From Macrostomum lignano (lineage: Eukaryota), in assembly GCA_002269645.1 (NCBI GenBank), contig NIVC01000901.1, forward strand, positions 76,173 to 140,172: a DNA stretch of 64,000 nt. Reading direction: 5' to 3'. A program made the translations under genes and the position numbers. Shown in pieces: positions 5,975-64,000 of this stretch; within the stretch, counting starts at the first letter, position 1, and each line of letters starts with the position of its first letter. The notes beneath the pieces were generated by a model. The model did no database searches. It worked only from the letters and a program-made list of their open reading frames with translations, and was not told where the DNA came from.

Positions 5975-6265
5975 ATAACTCGATCGTACAGGGCCTCGGT
6001 CCCGACGCTCTCGTCAGGTCGAAAGGCCGCACGGAGCAACCCTGAGTCCAACTGCCGCTCCAGCACAGCCGTCAGCGTCCACGTCTCGGCGTTGTAGAGC
6101 AGGACGGTTTCGACCACCGCCTGCCACAGCCGAGCCCTCTGGCGGGGCAGCGCTTCGGACTGGAGGACGGCCCGGATCGAATGGAAGGCCGCCCAGTCAA
6201 GTCCTCTGCGCGACGCCGGAGGCCCTCCTCCATACGGGGCACCAGACCGCCGAGGTAGGTGAACC
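5975..6265 (-). mobile_element. RTE-like non-LTR retrotransposon fragment (post-RT region)
   Basis: QAVVETVLLYNAETWTLT resembles the RTE-clade LLYGxETWTL motif; a second copy lies at ~57.7-58.0 kb. Confidence 0.7.
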
Positions 6266-10110: not shown

Positions 10111-10769
10111 CCCGATGGTGACAAACTAGGATGTCCATGCAGTACTTATAACATAAAAGTACACAATGTACCACACGCTGATGATGAGGTGATAACGTCG
10201 AAAATTCAAGCCAGAAGAGGTGGCGAAATTGTTCTAAAAAAGGTTAAAAGCCATCCCCAGGACCCGATTCAACTAGCAACCCATGCGACTGGAATCTCTT
10301 TGAGGAAAATCCAATTGGCCCAAGCAACTGGGCACGGCTCTACGCCTGATTGCAGCCCTGATGGGGGATTAGGAAGCATATATCCCATCGCTCCACTAGA
10401 ATCCAGATGGGAAAACCCGGGACCGACCCGATGAGCCGAGCTAGAAATCGCGCGGGGAGAAGCCGAGACAGAGGAAGATCGGGGATCAAAGCCTGGTAGT
10501 ATTAACTAATATATGATGGCAAATAGTTCACTGTATAATAATAAAATAATGCATATGAACTACGAGCGTATAACTAGCAATATTCAATCTTCCGGTTCTA
10601 TAGTCGAAAGTCTTTTATTATGGCGGCAAATACGGAACCCACACTGCACTTGACTGCACCCCGAATACTCGCTAGAATTGATGAAGAATAGATGCGTGCG
10701 AGTGAGACAGTAGAGATGCCAAAGAGAGGAAAAGGTCAAAGATGAGATTGAGGACCTAGTAGGGTGGCA

Positions 10770-12345
10770 TTGGCCCAGCAACTGAGGATCTGGGAGGCTG
10801 GCCCAGCAACTGAGGATCTGGGAGGCTGGCCCAGCAACTGAGGATCTGGGAGGCTGGCACAGCAATTGAGGATCTGGGAGGCTGGCACAGCAATTGAGGA
10901 TCTGGGAGGCTGGCACAGCAATTGAGGATCTGGGAGGCTGGCACAGCAATTGAGGATCTGGGAGGCTGGCACAGCAATTGAGGATCTGGGAGGCTGGCAC
11001 AGCAATTGAGGATCTGGGAGGCTGGCTTAGCAACTGAGAATCTGGGAGGCTGGCTTAGCAACTGAGGATCTGGGAGGCTGGCCCAGCAACTGAGGATCTG
11101 GGAGGCTGGCTTAGCAACTGAGGATCTGGGAGGCTGGCTTAGCAACTGAGGATCTGGGAGGCTGGCCCAGCAACTGAGGATCTGGGAGGCTGGCATAGCA
11201 ACTGAGGATCTGGGAGGCTGGCCCAGCAACTGAGGATCTGGGAGGCTGGCCCAGAAACTGAGGATCTGGGAGGCTGGCCCAGCAACTGAGGATCTGGGAG
11301 GCTGGCACAGCAATTGAGGATCTGGGAGGCTGGCACAGCAATTGAGGATCTGGGAGGCTGGCTTAGCAACTGAGGATCTGGGAGGCTGGCTTAGCAACTG
11401 AGGATCTGGGAGGCTGGCTTAGCAACTGAGGATCTGGGAGGCTGGCCCAGCAACTGAGGATCTGGGAGGCTGGCTTAGCAACTGAGGATCTGGGAGGCTG
11501 GCTTAGCAACTGACACTCTGGGAGGCTGGCCCAGCAACTGAGGATCTGGGAGGCTGGCCCAGCAACTGAGGATCTGGGAGGCTGGCCCAGCAACTGAGGA
11601 TCTGGGAGGCTGGCCCAGCAACTGAGGATCTGGGAGGCTGGCTTAGCAACTGAGGATCTGGGAGGCTGGCCCAGCAACTGAGGATCTGGGAGGCTGGCCC
11701 AGCAACTGAGGATCTGGGAGGCTGGCCCAGCAACTGAGGATCTGGGAGGCTGGCACAGCAATTGAGGATCTGGGAGGCTGGCACAGCAATTGAGGATCTG
11801 GGAGGCTGGCACAGCAATTGAGGATCTGGGAGGCTGGCACAGCAATTGAGGATCTGGGAGGCTGGCACAGCAATTGAGGATCTGGGAGGCTGGCACAGCA
11901 ATTGAGGATCTGGGAGGCTGGCCTGCAACTGAGAATCTGGGAGGCTGGCTTAGCAACTGAGGATCTGGGAGGCTGGCCCAGCAACTGAGGATCTGGGAGG
12001 CTGGCTTAGCAACTGAGGATCTGGGAGGCTGGCTTAGCAACTGACACTCTGGGAGGCTGGCCCAGCAACTGAGGATCTGGGAGGCTGGCCCAGCAACTGA
12101 GGATCTGGGAGGCTGGCCCAGCAACTGAGGATCTGGGAGGCTGGCCCAGAAACTGAGGATCTGGGAGGCTGGCCCAGCAACTGAGGATCTGGGAGGCTGG
12201 CACAGCAATTGAGGATCTGGGAGGCTGGCACAGCAATTGAGGATCTGGGAGGCTGGCACAGCAATTGAGGATCTGGGAGGCTGGCCTGCAACTGAGAATC
12301 TGGGAGGCTGGCCCAGCAACTGCATGAGGATCTGGGAGGATGGCA
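10770..12345 (-). repeat. 28-bp satellite array 2
   Basis: ~56 copies of the reverse complement of the array-1 unit. Confidence 0.97.
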
Positions 12346-13644
12346 CAGCAACTGGGGGTGTATACAGAGTGCTGATGGAGTTACGGAAATTATTCTGCAC
12401 TCTATGGAACACACAATCGCTCAGATAAAAGAAATCAGACCAGAAGATTAAAGGCAGCTTCACAAAAATCAATTACAGAATTTCATGTTTACAAAACACA
12501 CCTGCATTTTTATTCTAACAAAACCCGCTGGCCGAGCTGAACAAAGTCAGGCATAACTGTCCACTAAGAAAGAGTAGCAGACAATATTACGATTCATAGC
12601 AAACATAATAGAGTAAAATGTTACAATAAAAATGACACACAAAGTTATGAAAACATGCAGGTATTTAAAAAACTGCTACATATCGTGATTGATTTTATTA
12701 CAATAGAAAACTCATGCTTATTAAACAGTGCTTAAAGACATACAAGGCAAATGCAGCAGAATTATTAGAACAAGAAATTCCCCCCTCCCAGTCAATTGAA
12801 GCGCTCGAGTGTGCGCTTCAGGAAATTGAAGGCAATTTGTTGGAACTTTTACTCTTCCAGAATCCTTCCTTCTTCTTCATCATTATTAGCGGGAGTACCT
12901 GGATTTGCGCACAGACTGGGCTGCGCTGGCAATTACCGTGGAAAAAAATTTCCTCTGGTAAAAATCTCTTCTCAATCTTCTCCAAAAAAGCAGATCGGCT
13001 CGGCCTTGAAGCCAGTTCTCCAGTCTTTCAATCTAGACTAGAAAATTGCGACAAATTGCCAGAGACAGAGAAATTCGAGTGGCCAGCAGAAGCGACAAGA
13101 CAAGACTTGAAGCACTTTTGCATTTCTAAAGACGAGAGAGCACAAGATTTTCTACGCAGTTAAGCGCGAGAAGAGAAATTTAAACAACAAAGCAAATCAT
13201 ACTACTTGTAGCAGCAGAAATTGAATTTTATAATATTTTTCTGCAAGGGATTTTAAGACTAAGACGAGATGTTGTCAATCGAAAAAATCCTATTTTAGAG
13301 AACAAGCGTGCAGTGGACAGAAGTCAAGCCTAAGAGCGACTGGCGATTTCCTTCTTTCTCTGATCTTTACAACATCGAAAACCTACATGTATAGAATGCT
13401 TTTCTCAGGATGTGTTGCTCGATTTCAAGACATTGCATCGGCATGAACACTTGTCGGACTTACAGGACTAAACATTTCGTTCCTTTGCAGTCTTACCTAA
13501 AAAGCTAACTAGCAAAAATATTTTTTTTCTCTTACGAGTATACACTGTTAACTACTCTTAGTAGAACCACATAGAAATAAAGAGAGCGAATGAAGCAACA
13601 CAGGAAAACTGATGCGTGTCTTTTTAAAAAAAACAATAGTTGCA

Positions 13645-15895: not shown

Positions 15896-15943
15896 GCTGT
15901 TTGAGGAACGATGTAGTTAGCCACCCTGTCTCCTCATACTCAC

Positions 15944-16788
15944 CTGTACAGAATTGCCAAGCAGGCGTTAAACGTCACTTTATCCTCAAGCGCCCGTTCA
16001 ACATCCTGTTTAATCTGCATCAGCGCTGGATGCCAATTAGAATTCTCGGGCAGGTGCACCGAGCCGTAGGAATATTTCGGCCCAACCCAGTACGTCATCC
16101 TTGGCTCAGTGGATTCGCCTTTGCCACCTGGCTTGGGCCGAGTTTTCAGCTGCTCCCACGCCAGTTCAGTGGCCAGAGTATTAAAAGTTTGGCTGGCAGC
16201 TTCAGACGAATAGAATGCCGGATCGAACCGAAGCCGAGCCTCTAAGCCGCCTCGGCTAACGCTGATGACGTAATCGCCCTTATCTCGGACAACCAGATCC
16301 GGCTGCATCACGCCGCCAAACTGCTGTTGCCGAACTCCTTGACCTTGGCTCCAGTTCGGCCGCAATCGTTTCTGCATCAAATGCACCGGCTGCATCGGGC
16401 CACCGATTGGGCGACGGTTGAACCCCGGCTGCATCAGCGAGACTGCTGACGATTGGCCACCGGCTCCGAATTGGCGTTTGCGACTGAACTGCTGCTGGTG
16501 ATGCTTCATCTGCTGGTTATTGGTGTTCTTCTCGCTAGCCCAGGCTCGCTTCCCACCGCCGACAGAGCCGGCGTTAGTTGTCCACTTTGTTGAGAATTCC
16601 TCATCTCTGCTGTAGTCAGTGCCATCGGCGCCTGTTGCAGCCTCCTCTTCATCAATGTCAGCTTCCTCTTGCTTTTGTTGCTGCTCTTCATCATCGCCAT
16701 TGTCGCTGTCTGTTCGGCAGTTCAGAAATAATTCTTCCACTTTTTGAATGACCACAGTCTTGTCCGGGTGGTGAACTTCGCTGTGCTC
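15944..16788 (-). CDS. ALKBH3: ZnF-ALKBH3-like dioxygenase, exon 2
   Basis: Acceptor ctcaccgcgcag|GAG; donor TACAG|gtgagt. Encodes EHSEVHH (end of ZnF2), an acidic/Q-rich linker and EPRMTYWVG..NWHPALMQIK..FNACLAILYR. Confidence 0.9.
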
Positions 16789-16879
16789 CTGCGCGGTGAG
16801 GAGGGAGCGGGGCCCGAATAGTGTCCTGAGTTCGATTCCTAGTCTACTCACTTTTGTAAGATTCTGAGGGACCATTACT

Positions 16880-20830: not shown

Positions 20831-20960
20831 ACACCATGAAATGGGTGGCGTGAAGCACAGTATGATTAAGAAGAGGGTGGCCCAATAAAAAAGACAGCAG
20901 ACAAAGAAACTGTGTTTTGTTTAACACTCGTTTAGTTTTTTTTTCAATTTCAGAACCCAC

Positions 20961-21607
20961 CTAGAAGATCGCTTTCGACTGTTGCCGCTCTTGCCGCTAA
21001 CCGGTGCCCGATCACGATGCCCGACGCTGCCGGCGCCTCCGCTACTTCCGCTGTGTCGCCTGTGCTTCCGGTGCCTGCGTTTGCTGCTCTGCTGCTGCTG
21101 GTGGTGCACGGCAGCCCCCTGGCCGTTCTCATCTCCGCTATCGATCTCCATCTCATCCTCGCGTCGGCTTAGAACGGCTACTTCTGCGCCAAAATCGTCG
21201 GCCGTGTCAGCTGGCGGCGACGGCGCCTCGGGCGAGTCAACAAGTCGATCTTCAACTCGTCGACGCATAAAAGCGACCATCTCGCCGTATTTTTTATAGG
21301 CTGTCACGACAACATTAACGTCGGAATATTGAGCGGCAAAGAACATGTGAGCTTTTTCTAGTAGCGACAGTAGCGCCTCTCTACGCTCTTCCAGGCGTTC
21401 TAAATCGCGGACAAGATCTTCGAGTCGTTGGCAGGATTCTTCAAGCTGCTGACGATAGGCCTCGCCGTGGGAGCGATCTTTGATCTGGCGTACAGCAGCT
21501 GGACTGTGAATCTCTGAGGAGATCATGCAGCCTAGCTGGCGCTCCTTTGACGCCGTGTCAGTCTCCATGATGAGGAACTCTTTTAGGGCGGAGATGACCG
21601 AGTCAGG
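20961..21607 (-). CDS. RPRD2: RPRD2 orthologue, exon 5 (coiled-coil region)
   Basis: AHMFFAAQYSDVNVVVTAYKKYG resembles RPRD2 AGIFYEAQYKEVKVVANAYKTFA; acceptor ccacag|CCT, donor AG|gtgggt. Confidence 0.9.
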
Positions 21608-35771: not shown

Positions 35772-37025
35772 ATGTCGCACAGCCGATTTTGGTTAATGCT
35801 TTCTGTTACCATGGTAATACTCAATCAATCTGTTCATTCCAAGAGAGATTATCAAATAGAATTGATGAAGTATCTGAAGAACAACATCACGGACTACAGT
35901 CCGATAGTTCGGCCAGTGTTGGACCCGGACCAGGTGATGCTATTCAATTTCACCTTTCTGCTCAGCCAAATTGTAGCTGTGGACAGCGCTAAGCAGACTG
36001 TCAAGATATCCGCTTACCTTCAGGCTGGCTGGACCGAGGAGCGGCTGGTCTGGGATCCGGCCGATTTTGGAAACGTGACTGTCATGGACTGGGACTCCAG
36101 TCAAATCTGGTTCCCCGTGATTCTCATTTACAATGGCGTAGGCGACAACCAGCTGCTCAAGCCGCAGTTTCCCATAATCCTCACTTCCAGTTCGCCCAGG
36201 GCAACAGTTGCAGAGACAACCTGAGAGCAGGAATGGGAGTTCTCCTGCAAATTCGACATGAGCCTATTTCCATTCGACAAGCACGTCTGCGACATGGAAC
36301 TGTTCTGCAGCGACCAAGGTCGGGGTCACCATCTTCTCCAGCCTGCCATTGGCAACCCAATGAACAATGAGCTGGCGATTTACGTCGTTAATAGCGAGTG
36401 GAGACTATTGAATCTGAGCACATTCGTGCATCTGAGGTACTACGAGATGCTCAAGGGCCAGCCAAAGTTGCCGCTGCCAAGCTACGTTATTCGCATGACT
36501 GTCGAGCGCGTGTCCAACTACTATCTGCTGAACGTGGTGGCTCCCCTGCTGCTGCTAACGCTGCTCCAGTTGCTGATTTTCATCGTGCCAGTCGAGTCCG
36601 GAGAGAAGCTGGGCTTCGGCATCACCATCATGCTGAGCTACACGGTGTTCCTGCTGCTGCTGGACGGCCTGCTGCCCAAGTCGCAGTCAATGCCGGCCGT
36701 GGCGTCCTTCATCACGGCGGCCATGGTGCTGTCGTCGCTGTCCCTGCTGCTCACGTCCGTCGTGATTCGATTCCACTTCGCTGCGGACACCCAGTCGATG
36801 CCGCCGTGTCTCCGTCTCGTGTTCGTGACCTGCCTGGGACGCCTGCTGTGCACCTCCACCAGCGACTCGAAGGTGGACGTCGGTGTCGAGGGCGCTCATC
36901 GACCGAGCCGCTCCGACTGGGTGGTGGCGGCGCTGGCCCTGGAGAGGCTGATGGCTTTGGTTGGCAGCGTTGCCATCGTTGTCATCTTTCTTGGGTATCT
37001 GCTGGCTCCGTTCGCAACTCACTGA
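35772..37025 (+). CDS. Intronless Cys-loop ligand-gated ion channel (nAChR-like, non-alpha) with one in-frame TGA at 36222-36224; readthrough gene or recent pseudogene
   Basis: ORFs 35772-36224 and 36258-37025 are in the same frame. Signal peptide, RPV, WxExRLxWDP, WFPVILIYN, Cys-loop CKFDMSLFPFDKHVC, four TM helices, GEK before M2. Confidence 0.9.
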
Positions 37026-39663: not shown

Positions 39664-41635
39664 TTACGAACTCTGCTGAAATGGCACCAAGCAGAACAGC
39701 ATGTCGGAGTTCAACAGACGAAACCCGGACCCAGGATTGGTGATGACCACTCGCTTAGTAGTCTGCAGCTCAACGGTGCTGTAGCTGTCGCGATACCGGT
39801 ACACCCCCAGCGGGAGGATGCCGTGCGACTTGAACACGCCGGTGAACAGGTCGCCGAATGTGCCCTGCTCGTGCGGCCTCAGTCGCGGATCCAGCATGGA
39901 CAATTGCATCGCTCGACATCGATGCCGATTAGCTTGAATCTCCGGCGTCTCCTCCGTGCCATCCAGGTTGAGCCCCTCGGCCATGAGCACCTCCATCTCG
40001 GGCGTGGCGCCGCCAGTCACCAGTGTGCGAATCAGCGTCATGGCGTTCATGTTGTGAAACACGGTTGACATCAGCGAGTCCAACACCCCGGCCGTGAACG
40101 CGTTGCCGCAGGCGTACGGCTGCGAGTTGTATATCTCCTCTTCATCGGCATCATCGTCCTCCTGATCGAGGAATTGAATATTCTTACCGACGAAGATCTC
40201 GGTAAGAATGGGCACCGCCACCTTGGCCAGTAGGGACTTCGATTTGGCGTCTTTGCTCTGAAAGGCTTGCAATTGAGCCTGCACACTGGTGTCGAGACCT
40301 TCGGCAAATGACATTGCTTTGATGTTGAGCGTGCACAACACCACTTCCTTGTCCATTAAGTAGGGATCCACCTGGTCCTTCCACCTCGACTTGGCGCTCA
40401 GTATGACGCACATGTCGCACAGGTTGATCTTGGCGCTCCGCAGGATCACGCGGTTCATTGGCGAACCGGGAAACATGTAGATTTTTGGGAAGTTCTTCAA
40501 CGAACCCCATTCGCGTTGAAGGAAGTCGAGATTGCCAATAAAAACGATTGGCCTTAGCTCGTTCAGACGGAAGTTGCTGGCCCGCAGAGGCATCACGAAG
40601 CTGCGCAGTCCGATTAAAGGCGAGTCGCTATCGGCGAACACGATGACAACGTAGTGCTGCCTGAGGTCAAGTCTTGCAACGCTATTAGGCGTCAGCATAA
40701 CGTCCTCAAAGTTCTTGTCCGGACACCAGTGGAACATGCCAGTGAGATCAAAGTACTCCACGGACTCTTTTCTCGGTTCGACAAATTCGCCAAAATTGTC
40801 CTCTGAGCCGAACTCGGCCTCCTTCAGTGTGGCGAGCGCCTTGTTAGACACGACTTGAATCTCTGGCCGACGAACGTTGGCACTGTTGCCGCGAAGTCTG
40901 GTCAACTCGTGCGTCTCCCCGCAGCAGTGCCCGGAATCGACTCCGGGAGCACCTGCCGAATCCTCAGCGCGTGTACAGCTGCACGCCTTGATCTGCTTCG
41001 GCTCGGTAACGTCGCTGTGACACTTCCGACAGTACAGGTAGGCTCGTCGCACCCCCTCCTGCGAGTCGGCGATGAAAAATCCGTGGCAGCCGTGATAGAT
41101 GACGGTGTCCCTGCCGCTGGGGTTGATTGACAGAAATCTGTCGCCGTCATCGCTTTTGTCCTCCATCGCAAAGAGGAGAATCCCCAGTTTGTTGAAGCTG
41201 ACTTCCACTGCGTCCTGGAATGGCATGCCGACAAATGAGTCGCTGAAGTACTCGGAGTAGATCTCCATTGCGCTGCCAATCTGGTAGTCCTTCTCCCAGG
41301 TGTTGGCGCGAACTGATTTGCACATGGCTCTGGTAGAGAACAGGTTCGCCATCAGAGTAGAAAAGCCAGGCGCCAGGCAGCTCTGCGCCAGGAAGCCCTG
41401 CTTGAGCTCGGCGAGGCAAACGCATTCGTCACCGAATCGCCAATCCCAGTTCGGTATGTTCAGCAAGTAGCCTTTGTTGTGATACTGCAGCAGCTGGATG
41501 ATGCAGCGAGTTGTTGGCGAGGCATTTTTTATCGAAATGACACGCATGATGTTTGAAGCGTCCTCTGCGTCCGGGTCCTCGGTGTGCTTGTTGCCGAGGA
41601 CGATCACGGCTGAGGCTGACTCAAGATCGACTCGT
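39664..41635 (-). CDS. KCNMA1: Slo1/BK Ca2+-activated K+ channel, exon 3 (most of RCK1 + RCK2, Ca bowl)
   Basis: Acceptor cccttaacag|A reads Q-RVDLESASAVIVLGNK; LAELKQGFLAQSC, CRKCH, Ca bowl QFLDQEDDDADEEEIY..QPYACG. Confidence 0.95.
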
Positions 41636-42715: not shown

Positions 42716-43450
42716 TTAGGTGAGGAGTGGGGTGAGGAGTGGGGTGAGGAATAAGGTGATGAGTAGGGTGAGGAGTGGGGTGAGGAGTGGGGTGAGGAAT
42801 GGGGTGATAAGTAGGGTGAGGAGGGGGTGAGGAGTGGGGTGAGGAATGGGGTGATGAGTGGGGTGAGGAGTGGGGTGAGGAGTGGGGTGAGGAATGGGGT
42901 GATGAGTAGGGTGAGGAGTGGGGTGAGGAGTGGGGTGAGGAATGGGGTGAGGAATGGGGTGATAAGTAGGGTGAGGAGGGGGTGAGGAGTGGGGTGAGGA
43001 ATGGGGTGATGAGTGGGGTGAGGAGTGGGGTGAGGAGTGGGGTGAGGAATGGGGTGATGAGTAGGGTGAGGAGTGGGGTGAGGAGTGGGGTGAGGAATGG
43101 GGTGATGAGTGGGGTGAGGAATGGGGTGATGAGTGGGGTGAGGAATGGGGTGATGAGTAGGGTGAGGAGGGGGTGAGGAGGGGGTGAGGAGTGGGGTGAG
43201 GAATGGGGTGATGAGTGGGGTGAGGAGTCGGGTGAGGAGTCGGGTGAGGAGTCGGGTGAGGAGTGGGGTGAGGAGTGGGGTGAGGAGTGGGGTGATGAGT
43301 GGGGTGAGGAGTGGGGTGAGGAGTCGGGTGAGGAGTGGGGTGAGGAATGGAGTGAGGAGTGGGGTGAGGAGTGGGGTGAGGAGTCGAGTGAGGAGTGGGG
43401 TGAGGAGTGCGGTGAGAAGTGAAGTGAGAAGTGAGGTGAGGAGTGGGGTG
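42716..43450. repeat. 12-bp G-rich tandem repeat (GGGGTGAGGAGT)n in Slo intron 2
   Basis: ~60 units. Confidence 0.95.
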
Positions 43451-43643
43451 TGAGATAGGGTATGGAGTACTTAGGCCTGAAAGTATTAATCGTGAAGTGG
43501 ATGATGGTTGGGGATAGAAAGGTTGACTTCGACTTGGACTATGCGGTTGTTTAGATGGCTCAGAGAGAAATGGAATTTCCAAGCAAATGCTTGCAGTTTG
43601 TGAATCTCAAAGTACTCAAAGCAAGGTTTGCCCAGTCACTCAC

Positions 43644-45897: not shown

Positions 45898-46346
45898 AAG
45901 TCAGAAGGATGCTTCAGTAAGCAGAATGTTGATTGGAGCAATGAAGAATTTTTTCATTAGCTAAGTGAAAGCTGCTTGAGGCCCAAGGCGGCGTCAGGGC
46001 AGGAGAGTCCATCGTAAAGAAAATCCAATCATTTTCCAAGCTGCATTTTCAGCTGTTTGCTTCCACAAGCTCACCATGGCTGCCCCAGAGCATCTTTGCG
46101 CATAATTGGATTTTCTGGCAACCCAGCCTCTAAAAAGTGCACCTCCTTCTTCACTTCCTCTGCCTTGGGAGTAAACAGAAGCAGAAATGCAAGTAGATCA
46201 TTTGTACGACGTCCTACCATTTGGAATATTTAAGTTCTGTTTTCCTTTTTTACCCATCGCGGTTTGCGTAGCGTTGGTTTTTATGCAAATCGGGGTGTCA
46301 GCGTCCTCCAACGATAATAAATTACGCACAAAACTTTGCAACTCAC

Positions 46347-47312
46347 ATTCGGATTGCTGTAGTCACTCTGCGGATCTCCCGTGTTCTCAAACAGGTGCGT
46401 GACCCCGGCTCCGATAAGCCAGACGCTCAGGAAGATTGTGATCATCTGCAGGGAGCGGATGATGGCTCCAGACTTGACGGCGCTGACGCTCTGCAGCACG
46501 TCTGGCAGCGTCATGACTCTCAGGCTGCGCATGAACCGGAGTCCCAGCCAGGACTGGCTGAGGCACAGGCTCACGAAGGCTGGCGGTACAGTGCAGTAGT
46601 CCACCACCGAGTAGAGCTCCAGCCAGAACCAGAACTTGTCCTGCGCAGCCAGAAACCTGATGCAGAAAAACAACAAGAAGACGGTATTGAAAGCCAGGTC
46701 AGCCTGACTGAGTGGATTCCGCGACCAGGGCGTGCAGTTCTCAGTGGACCCGATTAGCTGGTTGGCCTCAATGATGTAGATTCCTGCCGACGAGATGCTC
46801 AGAACAAAGACTAGCACGGCTAGGATTCGACCGCTGACGCTTTGTGCGCTGATCAAATCGCTGGCCCAGTCGCGAATGGCTGAACTGCCGCTCGCTACGG
46901 AGCTGCCAGTTCGAGTGGCGTTGGGCGCGATTGCGACGCCGTCTTGTTGCTGCTGCTGCTGCTGCGAGCTTGTTGCTGCGGCTCCTGGCGCGATAAGCGC
47001 GCCCCCGCTGCTAGCGCTTCCGCTTCTCAGTGACTTCTGCTGCTCGTGCACCTCGTACTGATGATGATGGTTGCCGCCAGTCCCGGGGCGACCGCGCTGA
47101 CGCCGTTGAAAGAGTTTGATCAGCCGGTTAACTACTCGGTAGAGCACGAGAAAGAGCAGTCCGCCCAGGAAGGCCAGGGCTGTCGAGGCCAGATGGTAAT
47201 GCCATCGGCGCTCCGTGCAGGCTTGGACGCTGCCAGGGGCTGTCGGCAGGACGGGAGCGGACCTGGTTGCAACGTTTGACGTATCGTTGAAAGCGGCAAT
47301 TGTTGCGACCAT
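46347..47312 (-). CDS. KCNMA1: Slo1/BK channel, exon 1 (S0-S5)
   Basis: First in-frame ATG 47312 (the ORF-track start at 47357 is TTG); DWASDLISAQS..GRIL, S4 LRFMRSLR; donor AAT|gtgagt. Total 3363 nt = 1120 aa + stop. Confidence 0.92.
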
Positions 47313-49165
47313 GTCGGCTCCAGTTGGCAGAAATGATTTCGGCTGCAGCTCCAGCAACGCGTGGCCTGTTGCGCGCTCTGTTGCGATGCGAATCTCCCTT
47401 GGATTTTTTGAATTAAGACCGGGCCCCTCTTCTATAGTTGGGAGGCTTGCAGTGCGCGCCCAACCAACCTTCGTAATGCCCTGCTAGCTCTCTGTCTCTC
47501 TGCCTCTCTTACCCTTTTCCAGTATTTTCTCCTCCTCCTCCTAGAAGCCTTGAAGCAGACAGCAAATGAAAGATCAGAAGGAGAGAGAAAGAGGGTTGGG
47601 AGCCGAGAGGGAGAGGGAGCGCAAGGAGTACGCAACACGTTCAAATAGCTACACACGCACACACTATACGATGCCCTCCCGAACTATACCATAGCAAGCT
47701 GACACTTCCTGGTTGAAGGCTACCTGGAATTGTAATATTTCTTTCCTAGATTTTTCAGTAACATATTTCCAGCAATATATTTATTTAATCAGCTTGGTTG
47801 GCAACGCTAAAATATACAATGGTCAATGGGGACACTAAATGCGTCCACTTCCTTATGGTTAGTGCGTTAATGCTCAGAACGTGTTGTTTAAAACTTTACC
47901 TATCCAAAAATGACGGATGTAGCTAGGGCCAGCTATGGGTTCTACCTTCCCATTATCAGTGCTACATTTCCCCAGCGCGTGCATTCTCGTATCTGCATCG
48001 GTCGCCACACACCAAACATCCCTTGGGCAGATTCAAATCCGCACACACTCCAACGAAGCCATTATTGCATTCCGATGTTAAATATCAATAGAGCCAGTAG
48101 AGCGCCCACAAGAACTACCGCATGTTTGAAATTGGAAAGGTTATTCAACATGTACGAGTTAAGTACCAAGTACGCGCAGGGCCATCCAAGAGCCCAAGCT
48201 TGAATGCAATGCAGATTACTATCCGAAGGAAAAAACTTTCACGGACGGACGGAAGATGTTAACTGAGATCAGGAAATTACAGCTCACTAAATAACTTTCG
48301 GATCAACAGTGAATAAATGCGGGGTGCTACTCACCTATATGAAGCGACATTGTTCAGGATATTAAATCATTTTGCGATCACCTGTTTCCTGAAGATATTT
48401 ATTGAGTAATACACTGTACACTTCTCTATTAAGGCGCTGCGAACCATGGTGGTCAGGAGGAACAAGACCGTGCTCCATGTCAGGTGGAATGTTTTTCCAC
48501 TGTAAACCACAATTGGAGAAAATATTCGCAAAAGAGTTGCAGACACCCTGGCGCAACGCCTTCTGGATAGCTCTGCCCACTCAGCGGACTCCTGTGCTCA
48601 CCAGCGCGCCAGCACGCAGATAGTGTTTGCCAGCACGTCTGCGAAAGTCGGACTCGTTTACGTCTGAGCTCAGAATCAAGCGTTAACAAACAAACGTTTA
48701 ATGGATTACGTTTATGCGCGGGATATGAGTAGATTTTCTACTGTTACTAACCATGCCCTTCATTAATTATTCCCTCAACGCAAAAACCCCAGAAATGTAA
48801 ATTCCGCGCATACATCAAGACGATTGCATGGTGGGAAAACTGCACTTCAATGCCAGAAGTTGTAAACAGTGCAGTTCCACTTCACCTTATCCGCGTTCCT
48901 TGTTTGCAAATACAAGCGGAGCACCCTCAGCGCTTTCGGGCTGTCTTTCTATGATAAGAGCAAAAAACTGTGGATCGGTTCCTTGTCAACACGAGAAATT
49001 CATATTTACCTGGTGCGCCAGAATCTTGAGGGCTTAGAACCACCGATGTTTTTATCGGCAAGCTATGTTGAATACATTATGCAAATACATATTTAGGAGT
49101 AAATTAAATGAAAAGTTATGGTCTTAGAAAAAATGTGTTTCCATAGCGACCATGAAAAGCTAGGA

Positions 49166-50720: not shown

Positions 50721-52171
50721 CGGCTGAGCTGTCGGTTGCACATCTGGCCATTAGGGCAGGTGTAACAAATAAATTGTTGTTAGCTATTATTAATCGCTTC
50801 GCGTGTCGTTCTATATTCACAAGCAGAGGCACCTCTTAATAAAATATGAAATAATAAATTTTAAAATATGCGATATAACTTTGCTATACTTGACTTTCTC
50901 AGTGACTTCGCGAGTTCCGCATATAGTGCTCCACATGACATAAATGATAAAGTCATAGGCTCGTATAAACATGTCATTATAATTCTGCAATGTGCTTGCA
51001 GGCATTAATAATGCAGCATTACCTAAATAAATAATTAGTGTAAGTTAAATATATTGCTGACACTTGAAACAATAATTTTACACATACAGACCAAAAGTTA
51101 AAAATACAATTATATAACAAGATGGTCAAATTACTTACGAAAATTACAATATAATCTAAATGTAGAGTAACATTGCTACACGTATATTGAGTCAATTGAC
51201 TCAAAAAAGTGCTTGAAATATTTCACTACGGTAGATTGGCTTTTTTACATTTCTTTAAAATACACAGTTTGAATAGGATCAGCTGGACTTTCTTATTGGA
51301 TCTATAACTTTTTTTTTACAGTCTGAGTCTCTTTAGACGTTGAAAGTAATGACGGCACAGAGCTGCTGTATACCCTGTGTGAGCGGGTGTATGAGTGCGT
51401 CCTGTGTACAGTATAGGCGCTCTTGCATGTGCAAATAATAATATGAGTGAGCTCACTAGGATGCTCAGGCTTGGGCGCCGTGACTGCATGCCCCTCTCGC
51501 TAGTTGCGGGTCTTAACCTGATCGAAGGAATATGACCTGGTAAAGGCCAATACATTCCCCAAAAATCATTAATCACTGCCGGCCTACATATAACATACTA
51601 TAAGCCAGAATCCCCACCTATGCATAATCGATATCGCCATTCAAAGCGATTTTATTCGCCCGATGCAAAAGAATGAAAAGAAATTTCGTATGAAAGCTTT
51701 TGTGTGCTCTGCACTAGGAGGTTGGGACATGGCATGATGTGGCTTTAATAAAAATTGATTAACTTTGTATTTTTAAGCATATAATTCACGGTTGCACAGA
51801 AATATTAATGCTAGAGGACACTCCAACACAGACTTTGACTACGACTCGTGTACAGTCCCCAAGGGTTACAGTGAAGAACTTTCGTCTACATTTTTGAGAT
51901 CGGATAACTGCAAGCTGATTAATTCCCTGGCACAAGTTCTGCATATGCTAATATAACCAGTACAGAGAATCACTTTGGTTAAATCTCTTGAGTCCCCGGG
52001 TGGTTCCTCGAGTAATCAACGTCCTTGTTAGCTAGTTGTTTACTTTTATCCTTCTGCCTGGTGAGTCACATAGAGAGCCACATGTAAATGTGATAAATTC
52101 ATTTTAGCTGCGAATTTGTAATGCAAATCGACTGCATGCGCGATAGAATGTAGGGAACCCCAGCGTGGGCC

Positions 52172-52470
52172 CCTGACAGTCCCAGAATGTCAGTCCTGAC
52201 AGCCCCAGAATGTCAGCCCTGACAGTCCCAGAATGTCAGCCCCGACAGTCCCAGAATGTCAGCCCTGACAGTCCCAGAATGTCAGCCCCGAGAGAGCCCC
52301 AGAATGTCAGCCCTGACAGTCCCAGAATGTCAGCCCCGACAGTCCCAGAATGTCAGCCCTGACAGTCCCAGAATGTCAGCCCCGAGAGAGCCCCAGAATG
52401 TCAGTCCTGACAGTCCCAGAATGGCAACCCCCGAGAGCCCCAGAATGACAGCCCTGACAGCCCCAGAATG
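52172..52470. repeat. 23-bp tandem repeat (CAGTCCCAGAATGTCAGCCCTGA)n
   Basis: ~13 copies. Confidence 0.9.
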
Positions 52471-52489
52471 GTAGCCGTGACGTGTCTAT

Positions 52490-52655
52490 GAAATTTGCTT
52501 GCGAGAAGTTTGCTTGCCGAAGTTTGCTTGCGGGACTTGCTTGCGGAAATTTGCTTGCCGAAGTCTGCTTGCCGAATTTTGCTTGCGGAATTTTGCTTGC
52601 CGAAGTTTGCTTGCGGAATCTTGCTTGCCGAAGCAAACTTCCCGCAAGCAAACTT
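52490..52655. repeat. ~14-bp degenerate repeat (AAGTTTGCTTGCCG)
   Basis: ~10 copies, ending in inverted GCAAGCAAACTT units. Confidence 0.8.
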
Positions 52656-53345: not shown

Positions 53346-54213
<868 letters not shown>

Positions 54214-54222
54214 GACTCGCAG

Positions 54223-56837
54223 CTAGAGTCGAAGAGTCGCAAACTCTGCGGCAAGGTGATTCTCCACAGGTTCGGTACCCGCAGAACCGCTGTCACCGTC
54301 CAGCCGTTGCGGCCCCAGAATCAGCCACGTCTCCTCGGCGAACTCGGCGGCCAAGTTCGCCAGCTCGTAGGCGGTGCGGCAGCCGTCCCAGCCGGACCAG
54401 TCGGCTGCCAGATGTTGCTCGATATCGCCAACCCGCAGTTCTACCTTGTGCTTCTCCATGTTCACTCCGTAGATCCAGCGAATGAGCCAGCGGTTTTCCT
54501 CCTCCAGAATTCGTCGCTCGCGATTCGCCATGAAGTCGAACTTCCAGCTGGTGGCTTTGGCATTGCAAAAGTTGGCGCTCATTTTTTTAATTCCGGCGTG
54601 CAGAAATTCGCGAATTTTTTCCGCAGTTCGCAGACTTCGATTTCTGCGAATCGCCTTCATCAGTGCTTCTGCTTCAAGCGCTTTTTTATCCGCTTTGGAC
54701 TGCATCTCCCTCAGCTCCCGGTTGTACTCTGGATCCGACTTTAACCTCTGCTTCATCTGACTGAAAGCGTGGATGTAGGAGAACTCTTCGGATGTCTCGC
54801 TTTGGAACTGATGAGCAAAGGACCGGTCGAGCAGCTCCTTGGCTTCCTTCAGAGTGAGCACGATCGAGTTGCAGCACTCCTCTGTGGACCCTCTGCCTCG
54901 GCAGTGCAGCTTGACTGCTTCGAACCTCGCCTGTCGCATCAAGTTGCCGCGATCGCTGCCTGCTGCTGCAGCCGGAGCTGCGGCCGCTGTGCTGACGGAG
55001 CCGAGCTCCAGCAGGTCCCTCACTCGTTTGCGCACCGCGTCAGCCACATTTGACTGATCAGCCGCATTGCTGACGTAGTCATCAGCCAGGTTTTGAGCTC
55101 GGGCGCACAGCTCGTAAACGCGACGGCTGAAAAACATCAGACTGGAGTCCCTGGCCCTTTGCGAGTCACCCCCGTTCGCCATTTCCAACACCCGTTTTAC
55201 AAGGTCAGTTTTGCAGTCGTTTAAGAAGTCGAACACTCTTAGTGCAGCTTCGTGACGACCAAGTTGTAAGCAGAGCTCAATGTCTTCCAGGCTGGCTTGT
55301 GGGTTCTGTAGAAGGGCTTCAGTCAGCAAATCGTCTCTACGTGTACCGTCTGGCAGGTCCGAGTCGCCCGGTAACTGACTGAAACAGTCGAAAGCCAGTT
55401 GGTACTTGTGTTCCTTTAAATAGAACCTCCCCAGGTGCTCCCAGGCGAAATGGTTGCGCTTATTTCTCAACAACCCTCTGTGAAACTGATCCTCGATGTG
55501 AATGCTGTCTTGGCGCTGAATGCAGGACATGATATTAGTGCGAAACCAGGCCTCATATTCTTCATGATCCGGCCAGTTTTGTAATGCTTGCAGAATTTCC
55601 TCATATTGATAGTCCTGAAAGTTCTCCACAGCATCCGGACACGTCTTGAATGCTAGCAGGTATTCCTCGAAGCCTTCTTCGTTTCGGCTGCATTTAAACA
55701 AATAGTGCGCCTTTCTGAAGCGAATGCATGCAATGACCCGGTCATATACGCGATAGTTTGACGCCAGCAGGGAGTCAAAGGATTGGAGCGTATTTTCTAT
55801 TCCAACATCCTCAGCTTCCAGCTCAATGAGTTCAAGGTCGACCCAGTGGTTACCAGGGTGCATTGCAGCATTTTTACCAATTCTGAGTGCCTCCAGAGCC
55901 TTCTGTTTATCGCCATTTCTCATATGCAGTCTAGAAATCTCCACTAAGTTGGAACTTTTGCATCGGTCGACTGTTTGTGCTAGATCAAGGAGCTTATAAT
56001 ACTTTCCAATTTTTTTAAACCTTTTGTAAACTTTTATACCAATAAGAAAAGCTACCGGGTGCTTGGCCTTCTCGTCTCTTCCCAGCCGTTCCAACAGTTC
56101 AACTGCTTCATCCATCAAACTTTCGCACCACGCGGTCAGAGCTCGGTCGCTAAGCACCGCCTCGGAGAAGTTGGCACAAAAAGTCGGGTTTCGGATTCCA
56201 TCCCTGGTGGAAATCTCGTAGGCTCGAGTCCATAGGTTCAGCTGACTCTCGGGGATCTCACCGGGTCTGCCCTGTCTAGTTTGCCGGGCCAGCAGGTACG
56301 CTTTCCCCAAAGCCATCTGAAGTTGTCTGGCTGCAGCTCCAAGGCCAAGCCGTAAGCCTCAGCTCCTTCTTCGTACTTCAGCGGCCCAAAGAATCTTAGA
56401 GACGCGCCTTTGATGCCATAGACGGTCGCTCTGACGTCGGCGCTGCCCTTCCATTGGCTGGTGAGCTCGGCCAGCTCGTCGCCGATCTCGTGATGCATCA
56501 GCGGCCGACCCCGCCGGATCTGGCGGATGCACAGCCGCATGGAGGACAGGATGAAGCCGCTGTGCCGCCAGAAATCGTCCGTGTCGCGCACTTGTTCAGC
56601 TTCATCAAGGAATTGCTGCGCCTTGGCGAAGTTCGGAAACGGTGGCAGAGTTGATAGGTAGCTAAGGGTGGTCAGGTAGACAACTGACATCTCAGAGTCT
56701 GACAGCCTGTACTCCAGCAATCGTTCAATCACCTGGTCGATGTTGGTTTTTGTGCTCGACTTCTCTGGTTGCCATAGAAAGTGGCATTCCAGACTCGGCA
56801 GATTAAATGGAGCAGTCCTTTGAAGTGAAGCGTCCAT
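54223..56837 (-). CDS. Intronless IFIT-like TPR protein (~871 aa if the -1 frameshift at 56301-56307 is bridged) with a putative HEPN-like C-terminus
   Basis: LECHFLW (recalled IFIT5: LECHFTW); KGASLRFFGPLKYEEGAEAYGLALELQPDN (recalled IFIT5: KGWALLKFGGKYYQKAKAAFEKALEVEPDN); TPR-like AWEHLGRFYLKEHKYQLAFDCF. Two overlapping ORFs of 199 and 697 aa. Confidence 0.75.
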
Positions 56838-57599: not shown

Positions 57600-58010
57600 G
57601 TTTGCGTACTGACCCTGGCTGCGGTCCTCCACTGACACGCGTACAACGCGGTGTCCGTCGGGACTAGGCTGCTCGAGCGTACGACGCACGACAGCCTACA
57701 GACTCGCGTATAGATAGAAGTGCCACGTTGGTCCATCGCTCGTAGCCGATCTTGAATATTTCGCGCAGCAGACCAGCTGTGCCGCGTCTACTTGTTGGTC
57801 GAGTGAGTCCGTCAACGTCCAGGTCTCAGCGTTGTACAGCAGGACGGTCTCGATCACTGCTTGAAACAGTGCCAGGGCAGTCAGACAGGGCCTCAGACTG
57901 CAGGGCTTCCCCTCACAGAACGAAAGGCAGCCAAGACACGCCCACGGCGACGCTAAAGATCCACGCGTAAGCCAGAAACCAGACCGCTGAGGTAGATGAA
58001 CTGCTGGCAA
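57600..58010 (-). mobile_element. RTE-like non-LTR retrotransposon fragment, second copy
   Basis: LFQAVIETVLLYNAETWTLTDSLDQQVDAA, homologous to the 6-kb fragment. Confidence 0.7.
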
Positions 58011-58275
58011 CGCAGAATCTCCGTCGACTGCCTCCGCACTAAATTTCAGCCTCGATGTGCTCTAGCAGGCAGTGCACGGCTGGTGCAACGCTAAAATTAA
58101 TTTTCCTCTTCCGACAACGGCGTCTCTGGCGGAAGTATGGGATTGTCTGGCAGCGGGGTGGTGGCGCGTTAACAGTGGCGGTGTAGAGATCTTCGAAATA
58201 CAGTGCAAGCAGACTACTAGAAGCAGTAAGATAAAAATTTGCACAACCAAAATTTTTAATGTCACGCGATCAAAA

Positions 58276-58809
58276 CAAGGACGAAAAGACGGGAAACCTT
58301 GTTTCTTAGAAAAATTTAGAAGGCGGCTTTTCCCGGAAAAATACACTACGGAGATAGGAAGTTTTCATTTTTTCAGCACAAAAATTGTTATTGCCATTGA
58401 TAGGAGGCAGATCCAAGGCTCATCTTTTGATATGTTGTGCCTTACTTATTGCTCTATCGATATTTGTAAAACTTATCGTTCAAAAAATTAGGATTCAAAT
58501 TTAATTTTTTATTTTACGTACGTTTCCTGTACCTAAAAAAATAATAATGCATTGTACAGCTCCAAATCTTTGGTTTTATGAATCCATTTTATCATTTTTG
58601 CTACGCATATTTGTTACACAGTCAGCTAAGAATGATGAAATAGACTCATAAAATCAAAGAGCCAAGCTGTGCCATTTTAATGGTTTTTAGGCACTAGACG
58701 TGCACAAATATACGTAGAATAAAAAATTAACATGGAATCCTAATTTTCTGAACAAAAAGCTTTATGAATATCGATAGAACAATAAGAAAGGCACAACATA
58801 TCAAAAGAT
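58276..58809. mobile_element. Truncated, diverged copy of the P-like foldback element
   Basis: Shares AAAAATACACTACGGAGATAGGAA, GATAGGAGGCAGATCCA and the internal/right-arm sequence with 31646-32344; right TIR cut at ~58809. Confidence 0.85.
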
Positions 58810-58819
58810 ATGTTGTGCC

Positions 58820-61800
58820 TAAGCGGTTGAGCTGCCCGATACAGTCGAGGACTGTACGCGAGCAGGTGGTGCTGCGCTCAAGGGCGTGAATCGCCGCTTG
58901 GCTGTCTGATTGGAGGGTTATTTCCTTCCCCCAGACGCGCTGATTGTACAGCTCCATGGCGCAGGAGCTAATGGCGAGAACTTCGTTCTGGAAGACGGTG
59001 GAGCAGGTGCCGGTGTGTTGGGAGAAGGTCGCCATAGTTCTCCCTCCAGACACGATGCAGTAGCCGTATCCAGAGGCGGAGTTGATTTGGGACCCGTCAG
59101 TGAAGCAGTGGATTTCATGGGGTTTCCAGTTGTCTCTCGCTTCATGGCGTGGTGGAATGCCTCTCGCTGCTTCCAGGTCTCGCAGGCTGAGGTCGCCATG
59201 CGGCCGGAGGTTCCGCTTTCTGAAGGCAAACTGCTTCTGGATTTGGACACCCGCGTCAAGCAAACGTCGGGTGGTCTTCATTGCCTCCCCTCTGACATAA
59301 AGGTCGAGGGGGGATGTCCAAGAAGGAGTTCATGCCAGCGAAGGGCGTTGAGGGAGCTGCGCTCATGATAGCTCGACAAGCGCGGCCTTGCACCCTATTT
59401 AGAACCTCAAGAACCCCTTTCACCTCTAGGGCACTGTTCCAAATGAAGCCGGCGAAGGAGATGGCCGGTCTAACAATGGCAGTGTAAATCCACCAGAGGC
59501 GGCGGGGGGTGAGGCCCCAGGTAGCGCCGAAAGCTCTGCGGATCTGCGCGAGAGTCGCGAGAGCTTTGCGGGCTTTGGTTTGGACGTGCGGGGTCCAGCT
59601 TAGCTGTGGTCGAGGGTGACGCCCAGACATCTGGTTTGTTTCTCCATGGCAACAGGTTTGCCATAGAGGGAGAGCGGTTCGATCCTCCAGTTTCGGCGGC
59701 TGGTGAACATGATAGCCACGGTTTTAGACTCAGAGAACCTGAGACCGCAGCTGTGTGCCCAGCGTTCGGCACGGTGGATGAAGGCTTGAAGGAGTCCCTG
59801 AGGACCGCGGGTGATGGTCCAGCCACAGTGGCGGTAACATCATCCGCATAGCCGACCTTCTAAACTGGGTCCGGATGCGGGCTGCAAAGCAGCTCGTCCA
59901 TGACTATATTCCAGAGGATCGGGCTTAGGAGAGGATCGGGCTTCGGGCTTAGGACTTGCGGTCCGCCTTTCTGGACTTCCACGGAGCGCGAGTGTCCCAG
60001 GAGGCGCGAGGTGGCAGTACGATGGGAGACCATGTACATGATCCAGCGAGTGAGGTGCTCGTGCGTGCCCCGGGATTCCAGGGCCCGCTTAAAGACTTCA
60101 AAGAGCACATTATTGAAAGCATCATCAATGTCGAGGAAAAGCGAGAGCGCGTATCCATTGCCAAGCACGGCGTGCTCCAGCTTGTCGACAATGGCGTGCA
60201 GCGCACTTTCGATGGAGCGTCCAGAACGAAAGGCGTGCTGGTTAGGGGAGAGCGGGGAGTTCCTCAGCTCTACGAGGAGAAGGCGCCAGAGCACCAGCCG
60301 TTCCATCAGTCTCCCTTCCCTGGCTTGGGTATGAAGACTACCGTAGCCTCTTGCCAGGCTTTTGGCACGTACCCAAGGGTAATGCTGGCCTTGAAGAGGT
60401 TGCAGAGGAGGCCGAGAAACCTGTCATTTATAACTGCCTCATGGAGGAAGGCAGGATAAATGTTGTCAGATCCTGGTGACTTGAAAGGAGAGAAGTATTT
60501 TGCGGCGCGAGCCGTCCTCTCTCTAGTAATGATGGTCGAAGCCAGGATCTGTCCGCCCGGAGAGTGGTCCGGTGGGCCTAGCTGCTGTGCGGCACGTGGG
60601 AAAGAGCTGGTGAGCATGATGTCCAGCGATTCCCCAGGGTTCTCAGCGAGCCGGCCGTCCGGTCTTTTAATAACTGAGAGCTTTTACATTTTGTCAAGAG
60701 TGAGAGCCTTAACTACGCGCGAAGTGGGGCGGGTGCCTTCTAACTCCGCGCAGTATTGGCGCCATTTGTCGGACTTGGCTTTCCTGGTTTCACGCTTAAA
60801 GTCGCGGATCGCTTCTTGGTAGGCGGCCAGGTCAGCTGGGTCCTTGCTCTTGCGAGCTTACGGTTGGAAGCACTTTACCTTGCGCCGGAGGGATCCAAGC
60901 GCCGGGTGCAAACAGGGGGCGGATATTGTGCCTTTGTAGGCTTTAAGAGGACAGGAAGCCTCATGGGCTGTCAGGACGGTCTTGCTGAGCAAGTCTGCAA
61001 GGTCATCCACTTCCTGACAGATGGTTGGAGCGGCGGTAAACAGCTGATCTGTCTGGCGTTTCAGGGTTTCCGTGAAAGCCGTCCAGTCAGTGTTCCGGAC
61101 GTTCCTTTTCCACAGGATGTGAGGCTTGGGGCAAGAGGATTGCAATCGGAAACGAACGAAGCGATGGTCAGACAGAGATTCCTATTCGTCCCAAACCTCC
61201 CAGTCCTTGACTAAAGGAGTCAAGCCATGGGAGACGAGGGTAACGTCGAGGGCCTCCGTCCATCGCCCGTTGTCAAAGGTGGGGGTTCCACCAATGTTGC
61301 AAAACTCAGTATTGGTGGTGCAGATGTAAGCAAGGAGTTCCTCGCCTCTGCTGTTGGAAGTATTATTGCCCCAGTGGGTGTGGTGAGCGTTGACGTCGCC
61401 CGCCACCAGCAGCTCGAACCTACAGTTAGAGCAGTAGTCCACGAGGGAGATGAGGTTGGGTGGAACCGCGGGGCCATCGCCAGGGATATAGATCGAGGCG
61501 ATGATGACCGTGCGGTTGGTGATAATATGGTTGAATTGAATCACACAGAGATCTCTGTCAGAGAGGTCCGGTCTGTGCCAAGCTTTGAGATGGGTAGACA
61601 CGAACATGGCTGCTCTGGGGTTTTGGTGGTCTTGAAAACAGTCAAAACCAGCAGGAATATTCAGAATCTTACCTTTCTTTGTCCAGGGCTCCTGGAGTAG
61701 GATGATGCCCGGTTTCGCAAAGTTTGCCACCCGCATCAGGTTGGTCGAGGCCGCGATGCAGTGGTGTAGGTTTAGCTGCAGGATGTCCACTCCGGGGAAT

Positions 61801-62640: not shown

Positions 62641-64000
62641 TATTCCTGCACCAGAATATAGGGGGTGCAGGTGTGTAGGATCGCAGACCTGGTCTGTCTC
62701 ATGCTACACAGGCGTGCTGAACCCACCTTGCATGCGTTAGTATTATCACGAAAACAGTGAATTACAATTTCATTATGCGAAAAACCGGTTCGCAACATTT
62801 AATTTTAGAACTCGCAAAAAATGTAAACGTTAACCTTAAATTGACCTAAGTTTCACTGCTTCTTTTCGAAAATCTCATCTGTCAAATAAAGTCCTTTCGT
62901 AAACTCATCAAAAAAACGGTTTGAGCTCAAGGTCGACTCAAAACGGGTATAAATATAAGCGAAAAATCTGAGCTGAAATCCATACTCGTAGCAGCCTCGA
63001 AGCAGCCTCAAGAGAACTCGAGACAAACTAACATGAACCGAGAGGCTAAATCTCTGAGAGAAGCTTATATCGATCGGTAAGCCTTGGTCAAAGTCTTTGT
63101 TATTCGATTATTGAGAGCTGTGTTATTGCCGGCTGCTATTATACAGTATATTTCTATCGAGTTATTGAATTTGAGGCCTCCCGAGGAGACGAGGAGTCAG
63201 CGGCGTGATGGACCGGCAGTTAACGGCGCGGCGGCGCTCCCAAAAGCGCACAAGCACATGTTTGAGTTCTTTTTGCCTCTGTGTTGCTTTTCGGCCACGC
63301 GCATTCTTGCCGTCTTCGCTTGCAGCACACATAGGTTGAAAGTCCTCCCGGTGGCTTGCGAAAACGGGTGTTGACCGACACCATGTCCTGCCTCTTCAGG
63401 AGAGTCTGGAGAGGTCCATGAGAAGTCCTCCAGGAAGTTTCCGTTCTTATGCGGCGTCTCGAACAGAGACCGCTCAAACCTACGCAGGACAGTGTTCAGG
63501 TCTACGACGACATATGCACACTCTACGCGCATCGAGGGATGCTCAACGAAGTCTTGAGCCTTATCAGGCATGGACGCGCAGAACGCACAGAACAGGCGAA
63601 AGCAAGCTTTCCTGCGTGCTTTGATTCTGAGAACATGTACTTTAGATCAGCTCTTAGAAAACAATGATTAATATTGTATGCGGTTGGAGTGTTTGCGCTT
63701 GCTGTCGCCTGTCACTGTAACAGTCCCTGTAAATTTATGTACACAAACACTAAAATTGCTCTGAACCACATAAGCAAGCAGAGAGTACACAACAAATTGA
63801 ACTCAAACAATGCATAGGGCAGCACTGTAAAACCGACACAGCTTTTAAGATGCATTTTGTGCGCACTATCTGCCCCATAAGTGTTCAACTAGCTCGTATT
63901 CTTCATCTTTTTTGCTTAAAAGACGCAGTTAGAGAAAGGCCTTGGAGTAAAGAGAAGCGAGACACTCGCATTGCATATGCTGACTCTCCTCGTACTACGC

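Follow-up and report, generated by a model that had tools for sequence, protein, structure and literature searches.

A minus-strand gene in the flatworm Macrostomum lignano raises the question of what kind of domain has been added to the C-terminal side of an IFIT-like protein. The gene lies in a stretch of 64,000 nucleotides (the window) of contig NIVC01000901.1 (assembly GCA_002269645.1, positions 76,173 to 140,172), and an initial annotation proposed that it encodes an IFIT-like sensor of foreign RNA fused to a HEPN-like ribonuclease (RNase) of the prokaryotic toxin type. The sequence observations underlying that proposal were confirmed as correct, while its headline, a HEPN RNase effector, is unsupported. 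What is new here is an uncharacterised C-terminal domain appended to a predicted IFIT-like protein of TPR type. For this domain we favour, with modest confidence, a role as a non-HEPN helical cap or as a ligand- or partner-binding module that would cooperate with the IFIT-like binder of RNA ends.

Gene model and the IFIT-like N-terminus

The region in question, positions 54223-54900 on the minus strand, corresponds to the last 225 codons and the stop codon (TAG, 54223-54225) of an open reading frame (ORF) of 697 amino acids (54223-56316). An upstream ORF on the same strand (56238-56837), starting with MDAS..LECHFLW, overlaps it in a different frame. High-scoring tblastn segments of the homologues change frame at 56301-56307, and the corrected junction (..FRWLWG/KAYLLARQ..) pairs gap-free with FNWLYGEAFLRAR of P0001, a homologue from M. 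lignano. The frameshift-corrected product has 871 amino acids, is collinear with the homologues and shows no sign of an intron, consistent with a single exon. The 1-nucleotide deficit at 56302-56308 is either a true mutation or an assembly indel. This correction matters for the comparison with vertebrate IFITs, as the protein had been described as ~400 amino acids longer than these; the statement holds for the 871-residue product, which exceeds them by ~390 amino acids and carries a conserved C-terminal domain that is missing from vertebrate IFITs, and it does not hold for the ORF as assembled.

To what extent is the protein IFIT-like? A profile built from eight N-termini of the family (A3) matched IFIT5 (3zgq_A) over residues 13-175 with an E value of 4.9e-7 and 32.8 bits, and matched IFIT1 entries with E values of 5.6e-4 to 1.8e-3 (~6e-4 at best). 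Matches to IFIT2 and IFIT3 were weak (~0.3), and the remaining ones were to generic designed TPRs, with a single repeat each. The IFIT alignments all begin at the N-terminus of the protein, those with IFIT5 and IFIT1 extending from residue ~6-13 to ~175, and they are collinear from the LxCHFTW start (LECHFTW). The IFIT-like label is therefore borne out for the first subdomain of ~175 amino acids. Past residue ~175, we obtained weak matches to TPR_2, TPR_1 and TPR_14 and, in a second stretch, one weak match to IFIT1; an AlphaFold2 (AF2) model of the 697-residue ORF from the single sequence was unusable (predicted local distance difference test, pLDDT, of 43). Vertebrate IFITs and this protein are thus alike in being all-helical and of TPR type, and in sequence the likeness does not go beyond the collinear first subdomain and a single weak stretch further on.

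The TPR superhelix of IFITs comprises ~470-490 amino acids and encloses a pocket for the RNA 5'-end that is lined with conserved basic and aromatic residues, and IFITs are inducible by interferon or virus. Published surveys reported IFITs only in jawed vertebrates and none outside (PMC3688568). An IFIT-like N-terminus in flatworm-type genomes would imply a much deeper origin of this antiviral module, or else convergence or gene transfer.

Conservation and predicted fold of the C-terminal domain

An exhaustive phmmer search against 1.84 billion representative sequences recovered 16 relatives. The two best are M. lignano "hypothetical proteins" with 36-39% identity, and the rest are further M. 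lignano loci and proteins from ENA assemblies; the ENA contig of one relative, 621 kb long, is taken to be eukaryotic because it is full of retrotransposon genes. No prokaryotic or viral relatives appeared in this search, nor did any relatives appear when the signature of the AEFAE block was used in a pattern-plus-tblastn search of 185,579 prokaryotic genomes, JGI metagenomes and IMG/VR. A word-indexed homology search returned no matches with the 697-residue ORF and only two known members with the C-terminal profile, the index being insensitive for this IFIT-like family. The family is thus small, lineage-restricted and of animal type, found in Macrostomum-type flatworms and in eukaryotic ENA contigs, and it is unannotated and unstudied.

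Five M. lignano hypothetical proteins are homologous to the window copy at 22-45% identity (PAA92423.1, BOX15_Mlig030191g2; PAA48280.1 and PAA75149.1, Mlig006963; PAA78669.1, Mlig019237; PAA53315.1, Mlig010163). Their architecture is the same, and the three C-terminal motif blocks described below are all present in them. Unlike the window copy, some of them carry C-terminal RGG/GRGG repeats, and they retain His at the two positions that read R601 and N654 in the window copy. Long repeats of the RGG/GRGG(S) type are found at the C-termini of the M. lignano paralogues P0001 and P0008, and the ENA protein P0014 contains the whole C-terminal module in two tandem copies. P0008 is without the IFIT-like N-terminus, which may be an artefact of its gene model. 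The C-terminal domain accompanies the IFIT-like N-terminus throughout, down to ~25% identity.

We examined conservation in 14 non-redundant sequences (alignment A1), which revealed three conserved blocks around a length-variable region (Table 1; residues are numbered as in the 697-residue ORF). Invariant in all 14 are L496, D497, W610, W614, Y650, A653, A656, F659 and E661, and F583, R599, E600, E658 and A660 are kept in 13. The N..KH motif pointed out by the initial annotation is well conserved, with N619, K622 and H623 each kept in 12 of the 14 homologues, so that a lack of conservation, one of the two grounds on which the initial annotation would have been refuted, does not apply. A protein of the same composition would be expected to contain ~0.05 such motifs, and the conservation shows the motif not to be a chance occurrence. 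The variable insert begins with FSYIHAF, which resembles Y-P-H-A-F (family consensus YPHAF). All the motif strings quoted initially were found on the minus strand, namely IVLTLKEAKELLD, FSY (residues 512-514, positions 54775-54783) and RWLIRWIYGVNMEKH (residues 609-623, positions 54448-54492). H654 is kept in 11 of the 14 sequences, and position 601 is His or aromatic (H/Y/F) in 12. The window copy itself deviates at I515, a unique Ile where 11 of the 14 sequences have Pro, and at R601 and N654.

An AF2 model of the C-terminal domain, computed from the alignment, is all-alpha with 11 helices and has a pLDDT of 84.9 and a predicted template modelling score of 0.84 (model numbering plus 454 gives ORF numbering). 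The N..KH motif closes model helix 156-169 and is followed by a loop. The domain is thus shown to be real and conserved, and the model predicts with confidence that it folds on its own.

Table 1 Features of the IFIT-like gene and of its C-terminal domain, in window positions
Feature	Positions	Strand	Basis
Coding sequence part 1, residues 1-178 of the 871-residue reconstruction; IFIT-like N-terminal subdomain, MDAS...LECHFLW	56304..56837	-	ORF; collinear with homologue N-termini; profile A3 match to IFIT5/IFIT1
Frameshift site, G4A3 homopolymer run 1 nucleotide short; frame A (..FRWLWG) to frame B (KAYLLARQ..)	56302..56308	-	Sequence; tblastn frame switch
Coding sequence part 2, residues 179-871 (ORF-B residues 5-697); middle TPR-like helices and C-terminal domain	54226..56304	-	697-residue ORF; weak TPR matches; 16 phmmer homologues
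Conserved C-terminal all-alpha domain, ORF-B residues 455-673 (full-length residues 629-847)	54298..54954	-	Alignment A1; AF2 model
Block 1 helix IVLTLKEAKELLD, ORF residues 485-497, ending in invariant L496-D497 (14/14)	54826..54864	-	Alignment A1; model helix 24-50
Poorly conserved, length-variable helical insert, ORF-B residues ~505-586	54559..54804	-	Large indels among homologues
Block 2 FMANRERRILEEENRWLIRWIYGVNMEKH with R599-E600, W610, W614, N619..K622-H623	54448..54534	-	Alignment A1; model helices 133-152 and 156-169
Block 3 AYELANLAAEFAEET, consensus AYxVAHxAAEFAEQT, the family's best-conserved motif	54328..54372	-	Alignment A1; last helix of the model, 195-213
Non-conserved 24-residue tail and TAG stop; homologues end or diverge here	54223..54297	-	Alignment

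The tail contains an echo of the third block. Positions 54226-54267 repeat the core at 54325-54366 on the minus strand (HLAAEFATL versus NLAAEFAEE), with the 6-mer LAAEFA in common, and a shared 6-mer was attained in 5 of 2000 shuffles of the tail. This repeat is possibly the remnant of a small internal duplication.

Proposed HEPN relationship and possible function

The core of a HEPN domain is an up-and-down bundle of four helices, and its endoribonuclease activity is independent of metal and relies on the motif His. The model was compared with solved structures for this fold. A Foldseek search of 350,542 PDB chains with the whole 219-residue model, including the variable insert, gave a best E value of 0.49, none at E ≤ 0.001 and template modelling (TM) scores of at most 0.24; Foldseek performs poorly with helical bundles of small size. 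No recognisable HEPN entry was among the 50 matches listed, although the PDB holds many HEPN structures. A search of BFVD gave no significant match. On the sequence side, hmmscan of 14 members against Pfam-A, PADLOC and NCBIfam at E ≤ 10 found no HEPN family, and hmmsearch of PDB sequences with the family profiles, with and without the variable insert, found no HEPN either. Scattered matches of single members (DUF489, TACO1_YebC_N, SIR2, NNH6 and others) are attributed to chance. Hemerythrin/HHE-like and RNase III-like readings of the H/E motifs were dismissed, since the residues that would act as ligands vary among the sequences and neither fold nor Pfam searches support such readings.

The motif itself was compared with what is known of HEPN proteins. 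Their Rx4-6H motif closes helix-3, with the residue after Arg usually being N, D or H; helix-2 contributes a second acidic residue, often as E-x3-[KR]; between helices 2 and 3 there is an insert that varies; and a few families are without the Arg (PMC3710099). In our domain the position of the Arg (618) is occupied by V in seven sequences, D in four, and Q, I or G in the others, and never by R in the 14 sequences, so that the motif reads [V/D]-N-x-x-K-H. Strings resembling Rx4-6H are uninformative, as eight were observed in the ORF and ~5 were expected. The bacterial pattern quoted in the initial annotation (..RsaLD...YFP...WL......N..KH) looks like the consensus of this eukaryotic family itself, as a comparison with P0008 illustrates (RALD..YFPFAY..AWIIQWVSSVNEEKH).

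It is nevertheless possible to lay the model over a HEPN core. In this mapping, which is our own, the long upstream helix 24-50 bears the invariant D497 (within D-x3-K in 5 of the 14 sequences), residues 505-586 correspond to the insert, N-x-x-K-H closes helices 133-169, and the last helix is 195-213. However, this is the sort of fit that any helical bundle permits.

Read in this way, the domain would be a divergent, Arg-less HEPN-type RNase in which N-x-x-K-H stands for R-[N/D/H]-x3-H and K622 or another basic residue replaces the Arg, and one chain would combine an RNA sensor with an RNase. Both domains are all-alpha, and in both a conserved His ends a helix ahead of a loop, with an N four residues upstream of the His, at the place where HEPN motifs have the residue following the Arg. 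The 12-of-14 conservation of N619, K622 and H623, the conserved acidic residue in the upstream long helix and the poorly conserved helical insert before the motif helix would, on our mapping, fit as well. Arg-less HEPN families exist, as do animal TPR-HEPN fusions such as DZIP3/hRUL138, and HEPN domains have a role in immunity (PMC3710099). Against this stand the lack of any profile or structure match, the failure to find prokaryotic relatives in our searches, and the missing Arg, which weakens membership without abolishing it. Moreover, conservation is strongest away from the motif, in the last helix, and the block found there (AYxVAHxAAEFAEQT) is no hallmark of HEPN. We consider a HEPN-type RNase very improbable.

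The comparison with RNase L as a sensor-effector fared no better, since a Pfam scan of the full ORFs detected no ankyrin, protein-kinase-like or KEN domain; the ankyrin and kinase modules of RNase L are not present here, and any resemblance would be one of analogy. We advise against carrying the HEPN/RNase label forward; an entry as a conserved domain whose function is unknown is the better annotation.

What, then, might the domain do? The conserved polar and aromatic set comprises D497, R599-E600, W610/W614, N619-x-x-K622-H623 and Y650/H654/E658/E661. Judging from helical periodicity, Y650, H654, E658 and E661 would lie on one stripe of the last helix, adjoining a packing stripe of small residues (Ala/Phe). 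On this pattern, they are likely to make up a semi-buried pocket or network of polar residues together with D497, R599/E600 and N619/K622/H623. The intron-less protein of ~871 amino acids is arranged as an IFIT-like subdomain (LxCHFTW...), followed by degenerate TPR-like helices and the family-specific C-terminal domain of ~220 amino acids. A helical cap in this position would lengthen the IFIT-like solenoid and could tune or transmit RNA binding, by analogy with vertebrate IFITs, whose C-terminal helices mediate closure and partner binding. The weak structural neighbours of the model count for such a binding module, as the top ones are 14-3-3, a TPR domain, designed repeats, the MxA stalk and coiled coils, that is, helical-repeat or coiled structures and not enzymes. 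The RGG tails of the two M. lignano paralogues would also fit an RNA-related family.

Several points weigh against a cap or binding module. The invariant or nearly invariant carboxylates D497, E600, E658 and E661, together with His and Lys, look more like an active or metal site than like a plain binding surface. The clustering of residues was drawn from helical periodicity only, and the power of Foldseek on helical bundles is limited. In addition, searching the literature for the five M. lignano locus tags brought up no paper on them.

The domain may instead have a new type of catalytic role. It could be an effector enzyme whose fold is new and unrelated to HEPN, such as a hydrolase or nuclease that depends on metal, with an active site of D, E, H, K and Y. 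D497 and E661 are invariant, R599, E600 and E658 are nearly so, and H623, K622 and H654 are mostly conserved; the lack of a structural neighbour in the PDB and BFVD makes a new fold possible, and the fixed fusion to the IFIT-like part across deep divergence suggests functional coupling. Yet the candidate ligands are not all invariant, with H654 kept in 11 of the 14 sequences and position 601 varying between H, Y and F, whereas catalytic residues usually are, and these positions read N654 and R601 in the window copy. Non-catalytic helical domains, too, commonly have conserved networks of buried salt bridges, and searches of Pfam, PDB, PADLOC and NCBIfam with the 14 members revealed no recurrent family, enzyme families included, not even as a weak match. 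Such an enzyme is the main functional rival of the cap or binding module and appears unlikely to us.

The broader form of the sensor-effector idea is a flatworm-lineage IFIT-like sensor of RNA ends fused to an undescribed effector, which could derive from HEPN without its Arg or have a new helical fold of nuclease or hydrolase type built on D497, R599-E600, N-x-x-K-H and Y-H-E-E. We would give this rather little credence. If it were true, the gene would encode an invertebrate "sense-and-destroy" antiviral protein, and the IFIT module would be older than jawed vertebrates. The domain of ~220 amino acids, with no known relatives and a clear conserved polar signature, lends itself to study by structural and biochemical means.

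State of the window copy and its genomic setting

The window copy could also be a young pseudogene in which the domain would be inert whatever its ancestral function, and this could hold alongside each of the other readings. The 1-nucleotide frameshift parts residues 1-178 from the remainder, and three well-conserved positions carry unique substitutions (P515I, aromatic/His601R and H654N). The gene is located between an (ATAG)n array of 860 bp and a decayed retrotransposon without long terminal repeats (non-LTR), and its product is not among the database proteins covered by the word-indexed search. However, the frames are otherwise open on both sides of the shift, over 178 and 693 codons, and the shift falls in a homopolymer run, a classic spot for indels in long-read assemblies. 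The window copy departs from the family at 2 of 24 strongly conserved sites in the C-terminal domain and at 11 of 58 over the full length, a rate no higher than that of its nearest relatives, and the notion of relaxed constraint is thus unsupported. Frameshift aside, the copy looks like a constrained member of the family, as far as its sequence tells, and we regard a pseudogene as the less likely case.

The microsatellite downstream of the gene is a perfect (ATAG)n array of ~215 copies and 861 bp (53355-54215), which begins ~8 bp past the stop codon and gives rise on the minus strand to a spurious "SIYL" ORF of 317 amino acids. The non-LTR retrotransposon (58727-61790, minus strand) comprises Exo_endo_phos_2 (61182-61790), RVT_1 (59860-60306) and RNase H (58727-59281) remnants, which frameshifts have split into several ORFs. 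Long tandem-repeat arrays are found at 52171-52633 (periods of 23/94 bp and 14/42 bp), 4088-5224, 9140-12472 and 42716-43582, and they yield long spurious repetitive ORFs on both strands. An Rfam scan of the window found no family.

Three further segments (6046-6153, 57685-58059 and 63174-63536) gave short tblastn matches with 33-72% identity to P0019, a fused M. lignano gene model of 4203 amino acids. These matches fall outside the IFIT-like region of P0019 and probably reflect a repeat or mobile-element family that is shared with Macrostomum.

The gene content marks the window as animal DNA. Elsewhere in the window, we noted a weak exon for a 2OG-Fe(II) oxygenase of AlkB-like type (15940-16875, minus strand), a weak CREPT-like N-terminal exon (20921-21568, minus strand) and the transmembrane exon of a Cys-loop receptor (36258-37025, plus strand). 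Two very long exons of a BK/Slowpoke potassium channel (39664-41607 and 46281-47357, minus strand) encode RCK, BK_channel_a, Slowpoke_C and Ion_trans domains and have at most 48% identity to mollusc and arthropod orthologues in the protein database.

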